Sequence record: NC_021529.2
Length of the DNA: 64,000 bases
Strand: one strand, 5' to 3'
Part shown: positions 3,316 through 40,005 of the stretch, one piece after another
How the letters are laid out: every line of letters starts with the position of its first letter
Numbering within the stretch: position 1 is the stretch's first letter
The notes under the pieces: model-generated
Database searches by the model: none
What the model saw: the letters and a program-made list of their open reading frames with translations, nothing else
What the model was told of the DNA's origin: nothing
Made by a program: the position numbers and the translations under genes

Positions 3316-4440
3316 ATGTCTAAAACAATTTTTAATAAAAATAAGGTTGACCATCTTGGTCAACCTCTTTTCTTGGGCGAAGACCCGAATATTTCACGTT
3401 TCGAAACAGTAAAGCACGCTGTATTTGATCAGCTCACTGAAAAGCAGCTTTCATTCTTCTGGCGACCAGAAGAAGTCGATTTGACTCGTGACGCACAAGA
3501 CTTCGACCGTATGCCAGAACATTGGCAATACGTGTTCACACAGAATCTAAAATATCAATCACTATTAGACTCGGTTCAAGGGCGCGCTCCTAATATCGCG
3601 TTCTTGCCAATCTGTAGCGACAACGCATTCGAAAACTGGGTGACAACTTGGGACTTCAGTGAGACGATTCACAGTCGTTCATACACTCACATCATGCGTA
3701 ACTTGTACTCGAACCCGAGTGCTGTGTTTGATGAAATCGTTCTTGATAAGTCAATCATGGCGCGTGCTGAAGCGGTTACAGAGCATTATGACCGTCTAAT
3801 CGCAGAAACGCAGAAGCTACAGCAGCTTAAAGGCATGAATTGCGCACAGAGCATTCTACGCATTCAAGAAACTGCTGTCAAAGAAGCACTTTACTTGTGT
3901 ATGCACGCAGTAAACGCGCTTGAAGCAATTCGTTTCTATGTTTCATTTGCATGTACTTTCAACTTTGCTGAACAAGGCATCATGGAAGGCAACGCGAAAG
4001 TAATGAAACTGATTGCACGTGATGAGCAGCTTCACTTGAAAGGCACACAAGCGTTAATCAATATCTGGCACTCTGGTAAAGATGATCCAGAAATGGTAGA
4101 AATTGCTCGTCGTCTGAAACCAGAAGCTGAGAAGATTTTCATTGATGTAGCTGAGCAAGAAAAAGGGTGGGCACATTCATTATTTGCTAAAGGCACAGTT
4201 CCTGGCTTAAATGCAAATATGCTATGCGAATACGTTGAGTATCTTTCTGACAGTCGTATGCGTTCAGTGGGATTGGATAGCCCGTTTGTTCGTCGTAAGC
4301 ACCCTTTCCCATGGATTCGAAAGTGGCTAAATAGTGATTCAGTACAAGTTGCAGCACAAGAAGCTGAGCTAAGTTCATACCTAGTTGGTCAAATCAACTC
4401 GACGGTACGAGCTGAATTCCTAGAAACGTTAGAGGTGTAA
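3316..4440 (+). CDS. nrdB: Class Ia ribonucleotide reductase beta subunit
   Basis: FFWRPEEVDL, ETIHSRSY, EAIRFYVSFA, RDEQLH, QEAELSSY. Confidence 0.97.
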   Translation: MSKTIFNKNKVDHLGQPLFLGEDPNISRFETVKHAVFDQLTEKQLSFFWRPEEVDLTRDAQDFDRMPEHWQYVFTQNLKYQSLLDSVQGRAPNIAFLPICSDNAFENWVTTWDFSETIHSRSYTHIMRNLYSNPSAVFDEIVLDKSIMARAEAVTEHYDRLIAETQKLQQLKGMNCAQSILRIQETAVKEALYLCMHAVNALEAIRFYVSFACTFNFAEQGIMEGNAKVMKLIARDEQLHLKGTQALINIWHSGKDDPEMVEIARRLKPEAEKIFIDVAEQEKGWAHSLFAKGTVPGLNANMLCEYVEYLSDSRMRSVGLDSPFVRRKHPFPWIRKWLNSDSVQVAAQEAELSSYLVGQINSTVRAEFLETLEV

Positions 4441-22838: not shown

Positions 22839-23363
22839 CTATTTTCTTCGACTTGCTTTATTTGCTTTTCGTTTCGCTCTTCTAAGCTCTTTACGTTTAG
22901 CAATCTTATCAGCACGTCGAACAGCATCATAATCCGCTGCACAAGACGCTGCAAACGCATCTGGCTTGAATACGGGCTCTTGACCCACATAACCCAGAAT
23001 AGTTCCCTTAGCTTCGTTATACGCGATATGAGACCGGTGTGCAGGGTCTGGGTTGATATCGACGTGAACTTCGAAGCCTCGCGGGCCACACATTGGTTTA
23101 ACTCTCAGTGCAGTTTCACCAGCTTTATAAACTTCAGTCATCAAACGACTTCGAATACCATCTTTGCTAGACATATAAGCAGGTTCAGTTTCGACAGATT
23201 TGAAAACTTGAGCACCTTTACTACCTTCAAGATGTATGATTATCACAGTAGCGTAACTGATCATGTCACTTTTACGCTTGCTATCACACCCGACGTATAT
23301 AGTACTATTCGGATGACTGTTGTTGATAGCTGTTTCTATTGCTTCCCAATCGAACATTTTCAC
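22839..23363 (-). CDS. RNase H-like YkuK (DUF458) family protein
   Basis: IYVGCDS, RLMTEV, EVHVDIN, KPDAFAAS.AAD. Confidence 0.8.
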   Translation of the reverse strand: MKMFDWEAIETAINNSHPNSTIYVGCDSKRKSDMISYATVIIIHLEGSKGAQVFKSVETEPAYMSSKDGIRSRLMTEVYKAGETALRVKPMCGPRGFEVHVDINPDPAHRSHIAYNEAKGTILGYVGQEPVFKPDAFAASCAADYDAVRRADKIAKRKELRRAKRKANKASRRK

Positions 23364-23409: not shown

Positions 23410-24846
23410 TTAAAAACTGTATCGGTCAACGCCGACAGTTTTCAGCATGATCTTGACTGGCTCAAGTTCACCACCTAACAGTGAAGTTAGAATTGATGGA
23501 CTACAACCCGAAACCAGTGCAGTACCTGCTTCACCTGATTTAACAGGAACGTTGTCTAAACGACCGCGAATGTTCCAGAACACTAGTTGAGGCATTTCAT
23601 AACCAGCACGTGCGTACTTAGCTTTGATTGCGTCAAAGTTTGCAACTTCGCCACGACCATACCAACCACCACCGGTGTTTGCTTGATCGAATTCCATGTC
23701 ACTCATGATAAGCAACTTGGTTGGCATATCTTCTTGTGAAAGATTTGCACGACTCGCACGCTCTAAAAGAACGTCGAAACATTTCCCGATGTTAGTGCTC
23801 ATGTCTTCGCCTGAGCGATTCATGTTGTCAAGACGCTCTTTTAGTGAGCTACCGCGCAACTGGTGGAAGTGCGGATTACTTGAGAACGAAATGAATTGAT
23901 CTTTGAAGATACCTTCATTGCGCTCAGCAACGTAAATGCCTAGAGACATTGCTACTTGCTTACAAGTAACTGCGTTAGCAGCGTGTACACCGTTGATCGG
24001 CGTGCTCATAGAGCCAGACACGTCTACAACAGGGATGATACGCTCATCAGAGCCTTCCATGTAGTTCGGTAGAGCTTTCCATTGCTCGTTCGCTACAGAT
24101 GCGTTACCGCGTTCTACGCTTTTAACAACATCGTATGGGAACAATGCACCAGCGTTGATCTTCGCTTCGCCTTTTTGAAGTGATTCGATGTAGTTTGTGT
24201 AACGAGTTTCAGCGTTACGACCAAATGCTTTTTGATAACGAGCAGACGCTACAGAAGGCAACTTACCGAAGTCGATTGCATCCCAATCTTTCGCACACAT
24301 CTTTTGTTCAACAGTGTCAGACAAAAGAGCAAGAATCTTACGCCACTGCTTAGAAGTCACGCCAAGAGACTTGATTGTGCGCTTGAACACGTGACCGTTT
24401 TTGCTGTTTTCGCGAGGGAACCACTTAGCAGCAAGACCATTCTTGTCGTTGACAATCGCATTTGACCACATAGTGATCGCGTCTTTTTCAAGTTTAGTAC
24501 CGAAAGCAACGATTAAGTCATCGAAACGACCTAATTCTGGTACTTTTGACATTACAGCTCGTGCCACTTCTGGCTGTTCATTACAAAGTTTAGCGAACAA
24601 AGTACGGAAAGTACCACGTTCACCCGCACCACCTCGAACGTCACGAGACCATAGCAAGATGCGAGTCGCTAGTTCTGGGTTTTCTGCAAACGCACGACCG
24701 AACAGTGTTTTAGACTGATCGTTGCCACGCATAGCAGCAATACCGAAGAACAAGTTTAGACACTCGTTACCTGAAGTGCTGTGGGTAACTGCACCGTTTG
24801 CTGTACGTGAATCGTTTGATTGCATAGCGTTCATAAATGCTGACAT
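23410..24846 (-). CDS. DUF2828-type helical + vWA protein (Ro60/TROVE-like architecture)
   Basis: RDVRGGAGER, GRFDD, AAKWFPRE, VVDVSGSM MIDAS, SDMEFD, VFWN; GAGG SD before ATG 24846. Confidence 0.8.
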   Translation of the reverse strand: MSAFMNAMQSNDSRTANGAVTHSTSGNECLNLFFGIAAMRGNDQSKTLFGRAFAENPELATRILLWSRDVRGGAGERGTFRTLFAKLCNEQPEVARAVMSKVPELGRFDDLIVAFGTKLEKDAITMWSNAIVNDKNGLAAKWFPRENSKNGHVFKRTIKSLGVTSKQWRKILALLSDTVEQKMCAKDWDAIDFGKLPSVASARYQKAFGRNAETRYTNYIESLQKGEAKINAGALFPYDVVKSVERGNASVANEQWKALPNYMEGSDERIIPVVDVSGSMSTPINGVHAANAVTCKQVAMSLGIYVAERNEGIFKDQFISFSSNPHFHQLRGSSLKERLDNMNRSGEDMSTNIGKCFDVLLERASRANLSQEDMPTKLLIMSDMEFDQANTGGGWYGRGEVANFDAIKAKYARAGYEMPQLVFWNIRGRLDNVPVKSGEAGTALVSGCSPSILTSLLGGELEPVKIMLKTVGVDRYSF

Positions 24847-24882
24847 TGTTGATTTCCTCATATTAATTTGCTGTATAATGTC
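24842..24882 (-). promoter_or_regulatory. 5' UTR hairpin with ACAGCAA motif enclosing the SD and start codon
   Basis: GACATT-ATACAGCAAATTAAT-ATGAGG-AAATCAAC-AATGTC. Confidence 0.7.
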
Positions 24883-24894
24883 GTTGATGTGATG

Positions 24895-25576: not shown

Positions 25577-25944
25577 AGATAATCCTTAATTGTCCCCGTG
25601 AAGTGACGAATACATGAGCTGTCAAGACGTTTTCGACCATCGCCTTCTACATCTGGTAGCGTATATTCATCGTTAAATGGTTGACCGCTTTCTTTTGCGA
25701 TCTCGTAAGCATCAGCTCGATTGAAGTACTCACCACAATAGTTGATGAATCCCTGTCCACGATCACCTAGCTCACTTCGGTGTTCAATCGTACAACCAAG
25801 CTCTTTGATTAGCTTAAAAACGCTTTGCATGTTTCGACCGAAGTGGCAGCTATCAGCTACTACAACTTCACGTTTTTCACCGTTTGGTAATGTAACTCGA
25901 ATTGCGTTTGCAGCAGCAGAGATCACATTGACGTGTTCTGACAT
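25573..25944 (-). CDS. Conserved phage hypothetical protein
   Basis: QGF...GEYFNRA.AYEIA..SGQ pattern. Confidence 0.7.
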   Translation of the reverse strand: MSEHVNVISAAANAIRVTLPNGEKREVVVADSCHFGRNMQSVFKLIKELGCTIEHRSELGDRGQGFINYCGEYFNRADAYEIAKESGQPFNDEYTLPDVEGDGRKRLDSSCIRHFTGTIKDYL

Positions 25945-26282
25945 GAATCATACCTCATAAAAATAGAACCAACACGCTTGTATTGATCAGTGTTCATTAA
26001 TAGACGTGCCATTTTAGTGTGAGCAACTGGATTACTCGTCACTAGAATTACAGTCTTTGGATAATTGCCATGATCAATTGCATGAGATAAAATGTGATAT
26101 CCCTCATGACCTAGTGCATCGCCTAAGTCATTGTCCATGAATAATGTGATATCAGTTAGATTCGTGTGCTTGATGAATTTCATGCCTTCTTTATATGTTC
26201 GAAGAACTAGCTTTTCATCTTCACGAACTGTATCTGCGGTTAACTTATTAATGTCACGCAGATCATCGATCAATACATACAT
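25923..26282 (-). CDS. Cyclic-phosphate-processing receiver-like domain protein
   Basis: IDDLR, MDNDLG, GY, VTSNP. Confidence 0.65.
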   Translation of the reverse strand: MYVLIDDLRDINKLTADTVREDEKLVLRTYKEGMKFIKHTNLTDITLFMDNDLGDALGHEGYHILSHAIDHGNYPKTVILVTSNPVAHTKMARLLMNTDQYKRVGSIFMRYDSCQNTSM

Positions 26283-26343
26283 AATATTTCTCTTGCTTAT
26301 TGAATAAATACTATCATACAGTTCAAACAAAGAGAAGTCAACA

Positions 26344-31536: not shown

Positions 31537-31746
31537 AGACAATACCGAAGTGTTTTTTCGTCTTTGACATGAATCGGAGTTGACTATCTTATTGGTTCTC
31601 AACAAGCAAATATCGTCTGTTTCAGCGACGCGCCTATCTGACTATTTCTAGACAGAGAGAATCTTTCCTTTCAAGCTGCACCGAAGCACTTCCCAGGTTA
31701 AGACAATCACCTTTTTAAGTAAGTAATTGGTTGCTGTATATTGTCT
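31537..31746 (-). ncRNA. Long ACAGCAA-family structured RNA 2
   Basis: AGACAATA/TATTGTCT closing stem, ATACAGCAACCAATT, GACGAAAAAACACTTC. Confidence 0.6.
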
Positions 31747-31811
31747 AACTATCTGCACTCGTACGAATCTCGAAAGGTATCGTAGTTGTCGTGCAGAAGT
31801 TCTTAAATCTT

Positions 31812-32235: not shown

Positions 32236-32311
32236 TGGTGGAAATGACGAGACTCGAACTCGCAACCTCCTACTTGCAAGGCAGGTGCTCTCCCAATTGA
32301 GCTACATCCCC
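32236..32311 (-). tRNA. tRNA-Ala(TGC)
   Basis: Loop CTTGCAA, G3:U70, CCA. Confidence 0.92.
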
Positions 32312-32713
32312 ATTATACAGTCTGTGAACAATCGCATGGCAATTCGGACACAGTGGTATTAAATTTGTTATGTCATTATTCGTGCGGTCGTTGTCTATAT
32401 GATGTACATCAATTACTACATCAAAACCACAATTTGCGCACTTCTTTTCATAATGCTGAAAGCAAATAGTCGTATAGCATTTGGCATTATCGTTCCAGTA
32501 TGCTTGTCTATTGTTCGCACATGAGCGACTACAGAAACGTGAACGTTCATACGCTTTTGTATTTCGTCTGCCAACGAAGATATAAAGTTCACCACAACAC
32601 TCACATCGTTTAGTATGCGTTTTAACTGCACCTAGTCTTCTATCGACTGCTTCTGCTCTGCGTTGTTTGTATTGTTCTGTATGATATTTACCGTTATTCA
32701 TGATGATTCCCAT
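32270..32713 (-). CDS. HNH endonuclease with zinc motifs, overlapping tRNA-Ala
   Basis: CECCG, FCSRSC, VHHIDNDRTNN..NL..LCPNCH. Confidence 0.85.
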   Translation of the reverse strand: MGIIMNNGKYHTEQYKQRRAEAVDRRLGAVKTHTKRCECCGELYIFVGRRNTKAYERSRFCSRSCANNRQAYWNDNAKCYTTICFQHYEKKCANCGFDVVIDVHHIDNDRTNNDITNLIPLCPNCHAIVHRLYNGDVAQLGEHLPCK

Positions 32714-33029: not shown

Positions 33030-33105
33030 TGGTGCCCTGACACGGATTTGAACCGCGAACCTGCTCATTACAAGTGAGCTGCACTGCCAGTTGTGCTATC
33101 AGGGC
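33030..33105 (-). tRNA. tRNA-Thr(TGT)
   Basis: Loop CTTGTAA, CCA. Confidence 0.92.
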
Positions 33106-33110
33106 GATAC

Positions 33111-33223
33111 TGAGTGTCATTACTTGCGCCATCCGAGACTAGAGATACCAACTCTAAACGGGATTCGAACCCGAAACATTTCTTTTATCGGAAGAATTTG
33201 TAATTGTTTGCTGAAAACACTCA
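33111..33223 (-). ncRNA. ACAGCAA-family RNA enclosing an Ile-type anticodon arm and a T arm
   Basis: TGAGTGT/ACACTCA; CAGCAAACAATT; TTCTT-CCGATAA-AAGAA; CGGG-TTCGAAT-CCCG. Confidence 0.65.
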
Positions 33224-33231
33224 ATGGTATT

Positions 33232-33305
33232 TGGCTGGGATATAGAGATTCGAACTCTAACTGACGGAATCAAAATCCGTAGTGCTACCATTACACCATA
33301 TCCCA
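33232..33305 (-). tRNA. tRNA-Gln(TTG)
   Basis: Loop TTTTGAT, U1:A72, CCA. Confidence 0.92.
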
Positions 33306-34052: not shown

Positions 34053-34064
34053 ATTAAATTAAAC

Positions 34065-34123
34065 AGTAATCGTTTTTTGCTTTTTTAAAATAAAAGTTTT
34101 GTATTGTTTGCTGCAAGATTACT
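34065..34123 (-). ncRNA. Minimal ACAGCAA-family RNA with a Lys-type anticodon stem-loop
   Basis: AGTAATC/GATTACT; CAGCAAACAAT; CTTTT-ATTTTAA-AAAAG; CAAAAAAC. Confidence 0.6.
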
Positions 34124-34208: not shown

Positions 34209-34282
34209 TGGTAGCCCCAGACAGACTCGAACTGTCAACGTGCGATTATCGGTCGCGTGTTTTACCGTTAAACTATGGAGCT
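34209..34282 (-). tRNA. tRNA-Ile(GAT) with C33
   Basis: Loop CCGATAA, CCA. Confidence 0.85.
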
Positions 34283-37440: not shown

Positions 37441-37556
37441 TGGTAGTCGGGGCTGGATTCGAACCAGCGACCACGTGCTTAACAGGCAATTGAAAGAGTG
37501 CTGGAGCGATACTTGACAGTATCATTCTTCGTGCTCTACCACTGAGCTACCCGACT
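37441..37556 (-). tRNA. tRNA-Asn(GTT) with a 41-nt insertion between nt 28 and 29
   Basis: Removing 37489-37529 gives a 75-nt cloverleaf with CGTGC/GCACG stem and CCA. Confidence 0.75.
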
Positions 37557-39341: not shown

Positions 39342-39456
39342 GAGGTGAAGTGCAGGACTCGAACCTGCGACATCCGGCGTGCATGTGAATGCAGCATGAA
39401 ATCTTATCAGACTTCTTTTTTGGGCCGGCGCTCTAACCAACTGAGCTAACTTCACC
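39342..39456 (-). ncRNA. tRNA-like RNA with a 45-nt two-hairpin insert replacing the anticodon loop
   Basis: Canonical D and T arms, CCGGC/GCCGG stem, G-1:C73, ends TCA. Confidence 0.65.
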
Positions 39457-39469
39457 ATTGTAAAAACAC

Positions 39470-39599
39470 ATTGATGCGGGTGCAGGATTCGAACCTGCGT
39501 CACGATCTTATGAATGATATGCGAATTGATTGCCGTACAGATTCTTAACAGAATCAGTTTTTTGCTACGTGTGCTGCCACTACACCAACCCGCATCAAT
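39470..39599 (-). ncRNA. tRNA-like RNA (CAT, 8-nt loop) with a 49-nt insertion at 28/29
   Basis: 12-bp terminal stem, D and T arms, TACGGCAATCAATT motif. Confidence 0.65.
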
Positions 39600-39867: not shown

Positions 39868-39990
39868 TGGTCGAGTGTAACAGAATCGAACTGTTCCCAC
39901 GATCTCCCTATGATATGCGTAAATTGGTTGCTGAATATAATCATGTCTGATTACAGTATGCTACGTGTGCTGCCACTACACCAACACTCG
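39868..39990 (-). tRNA. tRNA-Pro(AGG)-like with a 49-nt insertion at 28/29
   Basis: C1:G72, A73, CCA, loop ATAGGGA; 74-nt cloverleaf once the insert is removed. Confidence 0.7.
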
Positions 39991-40005
39991 ACCAATGTAC
40001 TCTCG

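Follow-up and report, generated by a model that had tools for sequence, protein, structure and literature searches.

A conserved, unchargeable tRNA-like RNA in the tRNA cluster of Vibrio phage nt-1, a probable Y-RNA-like partner of a phage Ro60-like protein

Introduction

Y RNAs holding tRNA-like domains are encoded near Ro60 genes in both bacteria and phages (PMC4201824). In the Thermus phage phiLo, the phage Ro60 binds phage Y-like RNAs as well as the polynucleotide phosphorylase (PNPase) of the host (PMC12135203), while the Ppl defence is countered by gp130 of the Felixounavirus Bas63, a Ro60-like protein; the authors of that study guessed that Y RNAs are among the nearby "tRNA genes", although none was identified (bioRxiv 10.1101/2024.10.10.617714). 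Another family with a conserved terminal frame is that of the Class I RNAs of Dictyostelium, defined by a 6-bp terminal stem, a conserved 5' G, an 11-nt motif (CCUUACAGCAA) and a 3' CUGU (PMC7919456). Here, we describe a 113-nt element in a stretch of 64,000 nucleotides (hereafter, the window) of Vibrio phage nt-1 (NC_021529.2), a KVP40-like member of Schizotequatrovirus (Straboviridae). The element is located at 33110–33223 on the minus strand, running 5' to 3' from 33223 down to 33110, and is probably the gene of a small non-coding RNA of the Y RNA kind, that is, an unchargeable tRNA mimic that works with a Ro60-like protein encoded by the same phage.

Location and architecture of the element

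The 4 kb of sequence surrounding the element show 100% identity to nt-1. The element belongs to a minus-strand cluster of 28 tRNA genes (ARAGORN, Rfam) that spans ~27.9–39.5 kb of the window. It starts 8 nt past the CCA of tRNA-Gln (33232–33305) and ends 4 nt ahead of tRNA-Thr (33030–33105), and neither ARAGORN nor Rfam makes a tRNA or any other call at its position, even at E<=10. The features listed for it in the initial annotation are all present: the terminal TGAGTGT...ACACTCA, the motif CAGCAAACAATT (UUUCAGCAAACAAUUACAAA as RNA), the hairpin TTCTT-CCGATAA-AAGAA, the 5-nt ATGTT, the T arm (T)CGGG-TTCGAAT-CCCG(T), and the hairpin TAGAG-TTGGTAT-CTCTA. The order of the arms is permuted, with a closing stem (P1), an anticodon-like arm (hairpin 1, hp1), a 5-nt linker, a T arm, and then two hairpins (hp3 and hp4), as follows:

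33217–33222, minus strand: 5' strand of P1, GAGUGU, which pairs with 33112–33117 and is invariant in the genus
33197–33216, minus strand: frame motif, UUUCAGCAA followed by ACAAUUACAAA, predicted to be single-stranded
33180–33196, minus strand: hp1, anticodon-like arm UUCUU-CCGAUAA-AAGAA, at the position of the YrlA "V" stem-loop
33175–33179, minus strand: 5-nt linker AUGUU, similar to a variable loop
33158–33174, minus strand: T arm (U)CGGG-UUCGAAU-CCCG(U), with the canonical T-loop UUCGAAU
33140–33156, minus strand: hp3, UAGAG-UUGGUAU-CUCUA, with a D-loop-like loop, at the position of the closed acceptor-like stem of YrlA
33128–33139, minus strand: hp4, small hairpin GUC-UCGGAU-GGC, whose loop holds a conserved GG, at the D-arm position
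33110–33127, minus strand: 3' linker GCAAGUAAUG, 3' strand of P1 (ACACUC) and AG tail; ACACUCAG is invariant

In the YrlA RNAs, the hairpin ahead of the T arm was named "V" by Chen et al., and the closed hairpin corresponds to the acceptor-like stem (PMC4201824). By position, hp3 would be the acceptor-like stem of the element and hp4 a reduced D arm, because the homologous RNAs from Shigella phage Sf14 and a mycobacteriophage (see below) follow the YrlA layout. Whichever hairpin is equivalent to the D arm, the element has no free acceptor end. The early description of a rearranged tRNA that cannot be charged therefore holds for the permuted arms and the lack of a free acceptor end, while the term "acceptor-less" is doubtful, since hp3 occupies the position of the acceptor-like stem of YrlA.

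The cloverleaf of the tRNA family (RF00005), with its free acceptor stem and its D, anticodon and T arms in this order, is not found in the element. No ordinary, intron-containing or permuted tRNA with an acceptor could be built by hand, and none was obtained from ARAGORN or Rfam. A protein-coding function was also rejected, as only spurious short open reading frames are annotated across the element in some records, and neither promoters nor terminators were detected inside or beside it, with counts not above those of shuffled sequences. The 8 nt that separate the element from the CCA of tRNA-Gln (33224–33231, minus strand) form a conserved spacer (AAUACC/U...), also in the homologs. The AAUACC of this spacer is complementary to the GGUAU of the hp3 loop; a pseudoknot between them was not adopted, because both natural loop variants (ValKK3 and F86) break the pairing with no compensation. 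The tRNA cluster also holds an HNH endonuclease gene (32273–32713 of the window, minus strand), and the same is observed in F86 (L140:4498-4884).

Conservation and covariation

The fold energy of the element as a single sequence is unremarkable (z = -1.1), and the case for it therefore rests on the comparison across phages. BLAST detects the element in 50 Schizotequatrovirus-like records (49 besides nt-1), with identities of 73–100%, always between tRNA-Gln and tRNA-Thr and without annotation in any of them. The adjacent tRNA-Thr gene is less conserved, as exemplified by KVP40, TCU-VP03 and QD01, whose elements are nearly alike while their tRNA-Thr genes are very different. UUWCAGCAA is invariant in 12 genus sequences.

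Among 11 genus sequences, 97% of the helix cells are paired, and both-sided changes affect six pairs (three each in the T arm and hp3), compared to 0–1 such pairs in controls with slid partners. None of 500 shuffles reaches the observed value on four of the five measures, and 21 of them do so for pair types. P1, hp1 and hp4 show no variation in this set. A covariance model built from the same 11 sequences yielded three further full-length matches:

Divergent genus member 1.081.O: 61.9 bits
Shigella phage Sf14 (L134:6445-6565): 46.4 bits, E 2.6e-7
Mycobacteriophage Wigglewiggle (L138:4533-4655): 32.8 bits, E 2.4e-4

With these matches added, 17 of the 24 pairs change on both sides, affecting all five helices, and 97.4% of the cells are paired, while slid controls show 1–5 both-sided changes. 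In P1, five of the six pairs change on both sides through the Sf14 and mycobacteriophage matches. The stem of hp1 is conserved, with compensatory changes in 1.081.O, Sf14 and the mycobacteriophage, and its loop varies in both length and sequence. The T arm retains the loop GUUCGAWUC, and its both-sided pair changes increase from three in the genus to four in the wider set, whereas hp3 exhibits three such pairs, 100% of cells paired, and a nearly invariant loop. As for hp4, its loop holds a GG in every homolog, an extra inner pair beyond the three counted is G-C in D484 and U-A in F86 and D482, and the model search aligned it to the D arm of the Sf14 RNA. As far as can be judged from the aligned sequences, all five helices of the element are supported by covariation.

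The RNAs of Sf14 and Wigglewiggle follow the same order, with the frame, an anticodon-like hairpin, a T arm, a closed acceptor-like hairpin, and finally a clear D arm (GGUG-UAAUGGAA-GCAC and GCUU-AAGGGCA-GAGC, respectively). They are encoded ~1.1 kb (Sf14) and ~0.1 kb (mycobacteriophage) from the Ro-like gene of their own phage. Other searches for distant copies were less productive: the 15-nt motif pattern alone gave mostly chance matches in IMG/VR, the motif combined with the 3' strand retrieved only KVP40, VH7D and one false match, the T-loop plus hp3 pattern retrieved only KVP40 and VH7D, a metagenome scan returned nothing, and a BLAST walk starting at the most divergent member added no copies.

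A stem and CAGCAA frame around variable cargoes

The motif CAGCAAACAAU has two exact copies in the tRNA region and, when up to one mismatch is allowed, nine sites in the window versus 2.5 expected. The second exact copy (34103–34113) is flanked by AGUAAUC and GAUUACU, unlike the P1 of the element, the third (31736) by GUUAGACAAU and AUUGUC-U-UAAC, and the fourth is inside the long "anticodon arm" of a tRNA-like gene. Since the stems vary from copy to copy, an element acting at the RNA level is argued for, and the possibility of a MotA-box-like DNA promoter on the other strand was discarded, because independent copies hold different complementary flanking stems. In addition to the element, further features of the window that exhibit this organization include:

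34064–34122, minus strand: paralogous mini framed RNA, consisting of AGUAAUC, UUGCAGCAAACAAU, an A/U-rich stretch, GAUUACU and G
24838–24884, minus strand: frame-like hairpin GACAUU-AUACAGCAA...AAUGUC-AG, enclosing the Shine-Dalgarno sequence and the AUG of the Ro-like gene

Framed RNAs of ~60 nt with no cargo are seen twice in the window, at 34064–34122 and at about 31690–31749, both on the minus strand.

The distribution of the frame outside the window was examined in nine fetched loci around DUF2828 genes, the family of the Ro-like protein described in the next section, using a strict pattern (a stem of at least 6 Watson-Crick pairs, 1–3 nt, CAGCAA, 15–140 nt, the returning strand, and G). 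Six independent loci among the nine hold 19 framed CAGCAA sites (2–5 each), all on the strand of the gene and within ~1.2 kb of it; in the same six loci there are no antisense framed sites, and dinucleotide shuffles give means of 0.07–0.67 per locus. Overall, the frame (terminal stem, U(U/A)CAGCAA, variable cargo, returning stem, and G) is found beside Ro-like genes in seven phage lineages, and its stems usually open with (U)AG and close with CU, followed by G(U).

Several framed small RNAs were also detected by a pattern scan of IMG/VR in two contigs of uncultured phages (L050 and L042), where the stem is followed by U(U)ACAGCAA and the 3' end consists of the returning strand plus UG. One of the L050 RNAs scores 37 bits on the Rfam YrlA model (gathering score, 69), and the gene next to it encodes a DUF2828 plus DUF7788 protein. 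In both contigs, the framed RNAs form arrays of three or four immediately upstream of the DUF2828 gene (L050:11500-12250 and L042:1700-2530), and several of them follow near-consensus sigma-70 promoters. In the Aeromonas phage LAh_6 (L133:3021-3995), the kilobase ahead of the Ro-like gene is taken up by seven consecutive framed RNAs of 56–91 nt. The start annotated for this gene (3908) is probably set too far upstream, because the last frames overlap the gene and protein similarity begins at 4001.

The window also holds four unusual tRNA-like genes, all on the minus strand (37444–37556, 39344–39455, ~39472–39594 and ~39868–39993), which have normal acceptor, D and T arms and hold an insert of 44–60 nt in place of the anticodon arm. 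Three of the four inserts contain a 6-bp hairpin with a GNNA tetraloop, and a UUCAGCAACCAAU-like motif is present in the insert of 39868–39993, with a degenerate form at 39472–39594. ARAGORN calls none of these genes and Rfam two of them. KVP40 has comparable long tRNA-like genes in its cluster, annotated as tRNA-Pseudo-3/4/5, which may correspond to them. Citrobacter phage Ci1 also has tRNA-like genes with the motif in an extended anticodon arm, and genes of this kind directly follow its Ro-like gene (L132:5891-6125).

The Ro60-like protein of nt-1

The proposed partner of the element is encoded just past the tRNA cluster, on the same strand and 8.3 kb downstream:

23413–24846, minus strand: Ro60-like gene, with DUF2828 and DUF7788/vWA domains (Pfam E 3.8e-29 and 1.3e-46)

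An AlphaFold model of this protein, based on an alignment of 24 sequences, has a predicted local distance difference test (pLDDT) score of 81.9 and a predicted template modelling (pTM) score of 0.83. The eight best PDB matches in Foldseek are all Ro60 proteins, from phiLo, Xenopus and human, aligned over the full length with E-values from 1.7e-7 to 2.6e-4; the best ones have template modelling (TM) scores of 0.55–0.60, with the phiLo Ro60 on top. The model thus predicts the HEAT-repeat ring and the C-terminal vWA domain typical of the Ro60/TROVE proteins. The link is one of fold, as neither Pfam TROVE nor a PDB sequence search connects the nt-1 protein with Ro60.

The nt-1 protein shares 44% identity with that of the L050 contig, and DUF2828 homologs are present in 711 phage records, including 56 from Vibrio phages. 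They are encoded by Felix-O1-like, Campylobacter, Listeria, Staphylococcus, Enterococcus, Aeromonas and Erwinia phages, and by mycobacteriophages, where the product is labelled "Ro-like RNA binding protein". At least 7862 metagenomic proteins also match the family. In most of the fetched loci, tRNA genes are located beside the DUF2828 gene or a few kb from it. No paper tying DUF2828 proteins to RNA partners was found in the literature.

The frame-like hairpin at 24838–24884 lies just downstream of a TATAAT box. A frame around the start of the Ro-like gene would suit a protein that represses its own translation, as is usual when an RNA-binding protein regulates itself, and the hairpin may be a site of translational autoregulation. 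On both sides of the Ro-like gene (22842–23363 and 25926–26330, both on the minus strand) are encoded an RNase H-like PF04308 protein and a cyclic-phosphate-processing receiver (cREC) protein. The cREC domain has been linked to phage RNA-end repair systems (PMC7824862), and the three genes together look like an RNA-repair or RNA quality-control module.

Proposed mode of action

The element would be transcribed as part of the tRNA polycistron and released from it by the enzymes that mature the neighbouring tRNAs. In the resulting RNA, P1 carries the single-stranded U-U-W-CAGCAA on its 5' side and encloses the tRNA-like domain, formed by the anticodon-like hairpin, the 5-nt linker, the canonical T arm, the closed hairpin at the acceptor position and the D-like hairpin with a GG loop. 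The stem and the ACAGCAA module are predicted, from their co-occurrence with the gene, to be the binding site of the DUF2828/vWA Ro-like protein. By analogy with the Ro–Y RNA–PNPase complexes of Deinococcus and of the Thermus phage phiLo, the tRNA-like domain could then recruit a partner that recognises tRNAs, for example PNPase, an enzyme of repair or modification, or a nuclease of a defence system. Considering the activity of the Bas63 homolog, a counter-defence role for the element and the Ro-like protein is plausible.

Several observations weigh against a Y-RNA-like function. The binding of the Ro-like protein to the element is deduced entirely from co-occurrence, and in nt-1 the gene of this protein is 8.3 kb away from the element rather than adjacent. 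The Ro-binding motif of YrlA (GNCGAA / CGAA) is absent from the element, and the Rfam YrlA model matches neither the element (E<=10) nor its Sf14 and mycobacteriophage relatives (E<=1). Three of the nine DUF2828 loci (Ci1, Astolliot and AsFcp_1) have no match to the strict frame pattern. The covariation of P1, hp1 and hp4 stems from three distant sequences fitted by the model, which biases it toward the structure. Finally, the hp3 loop UUGGUAU is by sequence more D-loop-like than that of hp4, so that the equivalent of the D arm is ambiguous.

The isoleucine-like loop and alternative explanations

One claim of the initial annotation was that hp1 copies the unusual anticodon loop of the tRNA-Ile of the phage, as expected for a nuclease decoy or a T-box-like ligand. 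In nt-1, the hp1 loop CCGATAA is indeed identical to the loop of tRNA-Ile(GAU) (34209–34282, minus strand), which holds a C instead of the near-universal U at position 33. This tRNA also has a C-A mismatch atop its anticodon stem. Across the homologs, the hp1 loop is as follows:

nt-1: CCGAUAA, 7 nt
F86 and D48x: UCGAUAC, 7 nt
1.081.O: CUUUUAC, 7 nt
VS1: CUAUGAA, 7 nt
TCU-VP03, QD01 and ValKK3 group: CUGAUGAA, 8 nt
KVP40 group: CUUACGAA, 8 nt
VH7D group: AUCGGA, 6 nt
Sf14 RNA and mycobacteriophage RNA (equivalent loops): CUUAUAA and CUGGUAA

As a conserved feature, the copy of the Ile loop does not hold, since this loop is the least conserved part of the element and has changed in KVP40, VH7D and VS1. 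Conservation of the anticodon hairpin had been set beforehand as a test, and the stem is conserved whereas the loop is not. The reading of the tRNA-Ile genes covered nt-1, KVP40, VH7D, F86, 1.081.O and Sf14, with VS1 left out; the loop is CCGAUAA in the first four and the ordinary CUGAUAA in the last two. KVP40 and VH7D have therefore changed the hp1 loop while keeping that of tRNA-Ile, which indicates that the display of an Ile anticodon cannot be the conserved function. The CGAUA core, including C33, is common to nt-1 and F86/D48x, and the tRNA-Ile of F86 also has C33, a hint that the loops of hp1 and of the C33 tRNA-Ile are related by ancestry. The likeness is probably ancestral, and dispensable, because several lineages have lost it.

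A decoy for an anticodon nuclease would hold a copy of the C33 tRNA-Ile loop on an unchargeable scaffold in order to soak up or inhibit a host nuclease directed against tRNA-Ile. The identity of all seven positions in nt-1, which by our own arithmetic would be expected against one of ~25 tRNA loops for roughly 0.15% of random loops, speaks for this possibility, as do the C33-containing core retained by F86/D48x alongside the C33 of the F86 tRNA-Ile, and the anticodon-like pyrimidines at 32 and 33 and U36-A37 shared by all five 7-nt loops of the wider family. The Ro-like homolog of Bas63, which counters a defence system (bioRxiv 10.1101/2024.10.10.617714), would also be in line with it. However, the mimicry is lost in KVP40 (CUUACGAA) and VH7D (AUCGGA), despite the CCGAUAA of their tRNA-Ile, and in VS1 (CUAUGAA), whose tRNA-Ile is outside the comparison, while Sf14 and 1.081.O display UAU and UUU instead of their own Ile loop CUGAUAA. 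In addition, the stems of hp1 and tRNA-Ile are unrelated, and the element is invariant in the frame motif, the T loop and the loop of hp3 rather than in that of hp1. We know of no Ile-specific anticodon nuclease, and the decoy is considered improbable; a T-box ligand has, to our knowledge, no basis in a Vibrio phage. A Y-RNA-like role fits better than either of them. Even more improbable, and disfavoured, is a decaying pseudogene or fusion remnant, which would consist of the 3' two-thirds of a tRNA fused to the D arm of the following one and would have no function. A dense tRNA cluster with HNH endonuclease genes and other odd tRNA-like genes would be a suitable setting for such a remnant, the anticodon arm, variable loop and T arm follow the order of a tRNA, and the 5' part of the Sf14 homolog (frame, anticodon-like arm and T arm) reaches 30 bits on the Rfam tRNA model, where the gathering score is 29. 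Nevertheless, the element is more tightly conserved than the functional tRNA-Thr beside it, all its helices are held paired by compensatory changes, its single-stranded motifs are invariant, and Felix-O1-like phages and mycobacteriophages have RNAs with this architecture as well.

The element could also be a structured stable RNA or a processing element of the tRNA operon that is independent of the Ro-like protein. RNase P or RNase E might use it as a handle, or tRNA-modifying enzymes as a scaffold, or it might resemble species 1 and 2 of T4 (rnaC and rnaD). The T4 RNAs likewise adjoin tRNA genes, a T arm is also present in rnaC, and the conserved 5' spacer AAUACC, together with the tight packing between two tRNAs, suggests co-processing. 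This explanation is unlikely, as it does not account for the recurrence of the frame on cargo-less mini RNAs and on the leader of the Ro-like gene, nor for its specificity to phages that encode the Ro-like protein, and no model match links the element to rnaC and rnaD.

Implications

In the tRNA clusters of large lytic phages, "pseudo-tRNAs" and gaps are routinely ignored, and one such gap in nt-1 holds a conserved structured RNA. If this element is a partner of the Ro60-like protein, a widespread system would acquire its missing RNA component, and a newly defined protein-binding RNA frame would become available for searches. It would also become testable whether phage Ro–Y RNA particles built around tRNA mimics protect, repair or police the tRNA pool.

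A broader and more tentative proposal, possible rather than probable, is that the stem, U(U/A)CAGCAA and the 3' CUG(U) constitute a universal recognition module of the DUF2828 Ro60-like proteins, with phage arrays of different cargoes, and with the Class I RNAs of dictyostelids as their eukaryotic counterpart. If so, arrays of framed RNAs would occur in at least seven lineages (T4-like, Felix-O1-like, Campylobacter, Listeria, Aeromonas, mycobacterial and uncultured phages), their cargoes would range from none to tRNA-like domains and the mRNA leader of the Ro-like protein itself, and the Class I RNAs, so far deemed unique to social amoebae, would belong to the same ribonucleoprotein system. 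The likeness of the frames offers a concrete hypothesis on the mechanism of the Class I RNAs.

Comparison with known systems

The T4 species 1 and 2 (rnaC and rnaD) are stable small RNAs encoded at the end of a T4-type tRNA cluster and, like the element, rnaC carries a T arm. However, as in a tRNA, this arm occupies the 3' end, and the T4 RNAs have no CAGCAA frame. Homology was rejected after reading the sequences, which show no similarity, and the covariance model does not match them. The annotated neighbourhood of rnaC and rnaD contains no gene for a Ro-like or RNA-binding protein, although no direct search of T4 was made. Thermus phage phiLo is closer to nt-1, as it encodes both Y-like RNAs (Yrl1 and Yrl2) and a Ro60-fold protein; unlike the element, these RNAs were identified by their CGAA motif, are located directly upstream of the gene, and have no described tRNA-like domain (PMC12135203).

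With the Class I RNAs (RF01414), the element shares the frame, with a conserved 5' G and a stem of 6–8 bp that keeps its pairing despite sequence variation; ...U(U)ACAGCAA, unpaired, directly follows the 5' strand, and the interior is variable, with C-U/A-G-U as the 3' tail. The mini RNA of nt-1 (34064–34122) matches RF01414 from end to end with 33.4 bits (E 4e-5 in a 146-nt search), and two RNAs of Aeromonas phages score 28–30 bits on this model, all of them below the gathering score of 41.5. The element itself shares with Class I the stem and U-U-U-CAGCAA, but it does not match RF01414 even at E<=10, and with its 113 nt and its CAGU end it departs from the Class I combination of stem, CCUUACAGCAA, 3' CUGU and 42–65 nt. 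It is twice as long as a Class I RNA because of its tRNA-like cargo of 80 nt. Unlike the element, the Class I RNAs belong to eukaryotes and possess a promoter element of their own, and a protein with an RNA recognition motif is reported to bind them (PMC7919456).

The closest system is that of the YrlA RNAs (RF02553; PMC4201824). Both kinds of RNA are ~110–120 nt long, with the ends paired in a closing stem, which in the element is P1 (GAGUGU/ACACUC), and with an additional stem-loop upstream of the T arm. Both appear to hold an internal tRNA-like domain in which a canonical T arm is followed by a closed hairpin at the acceptor position and a D-like hairpin; in the element, the T arm covaries and the two hairpins come in this order, but the shrunken D-position hairpin has only 3 bp and the D-loop-like UUGGUAU is on the acceptor-position one. 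In both cases, the RNA cannot be aminoacylated and the genome encodes a Ro60-fold protein, on the same strand as the element in nt-1. The differences are also clear, since the element is part of a tRNA polycistron and 8 kb separate it from the protein gene, its proposed partner belongs to DUF2828 rather than to Pfam TROVE, and its 5' side carries UUWCAGCAA in place of the GNCGAA(N)G found in that strand of the YrlA stem. Judged by analogy, the element lacks the CGAA-type motif and stays short of the 69 bits of the YrlA gathering threshold, yet it appears to work like a Y RNA of the YrlA type.

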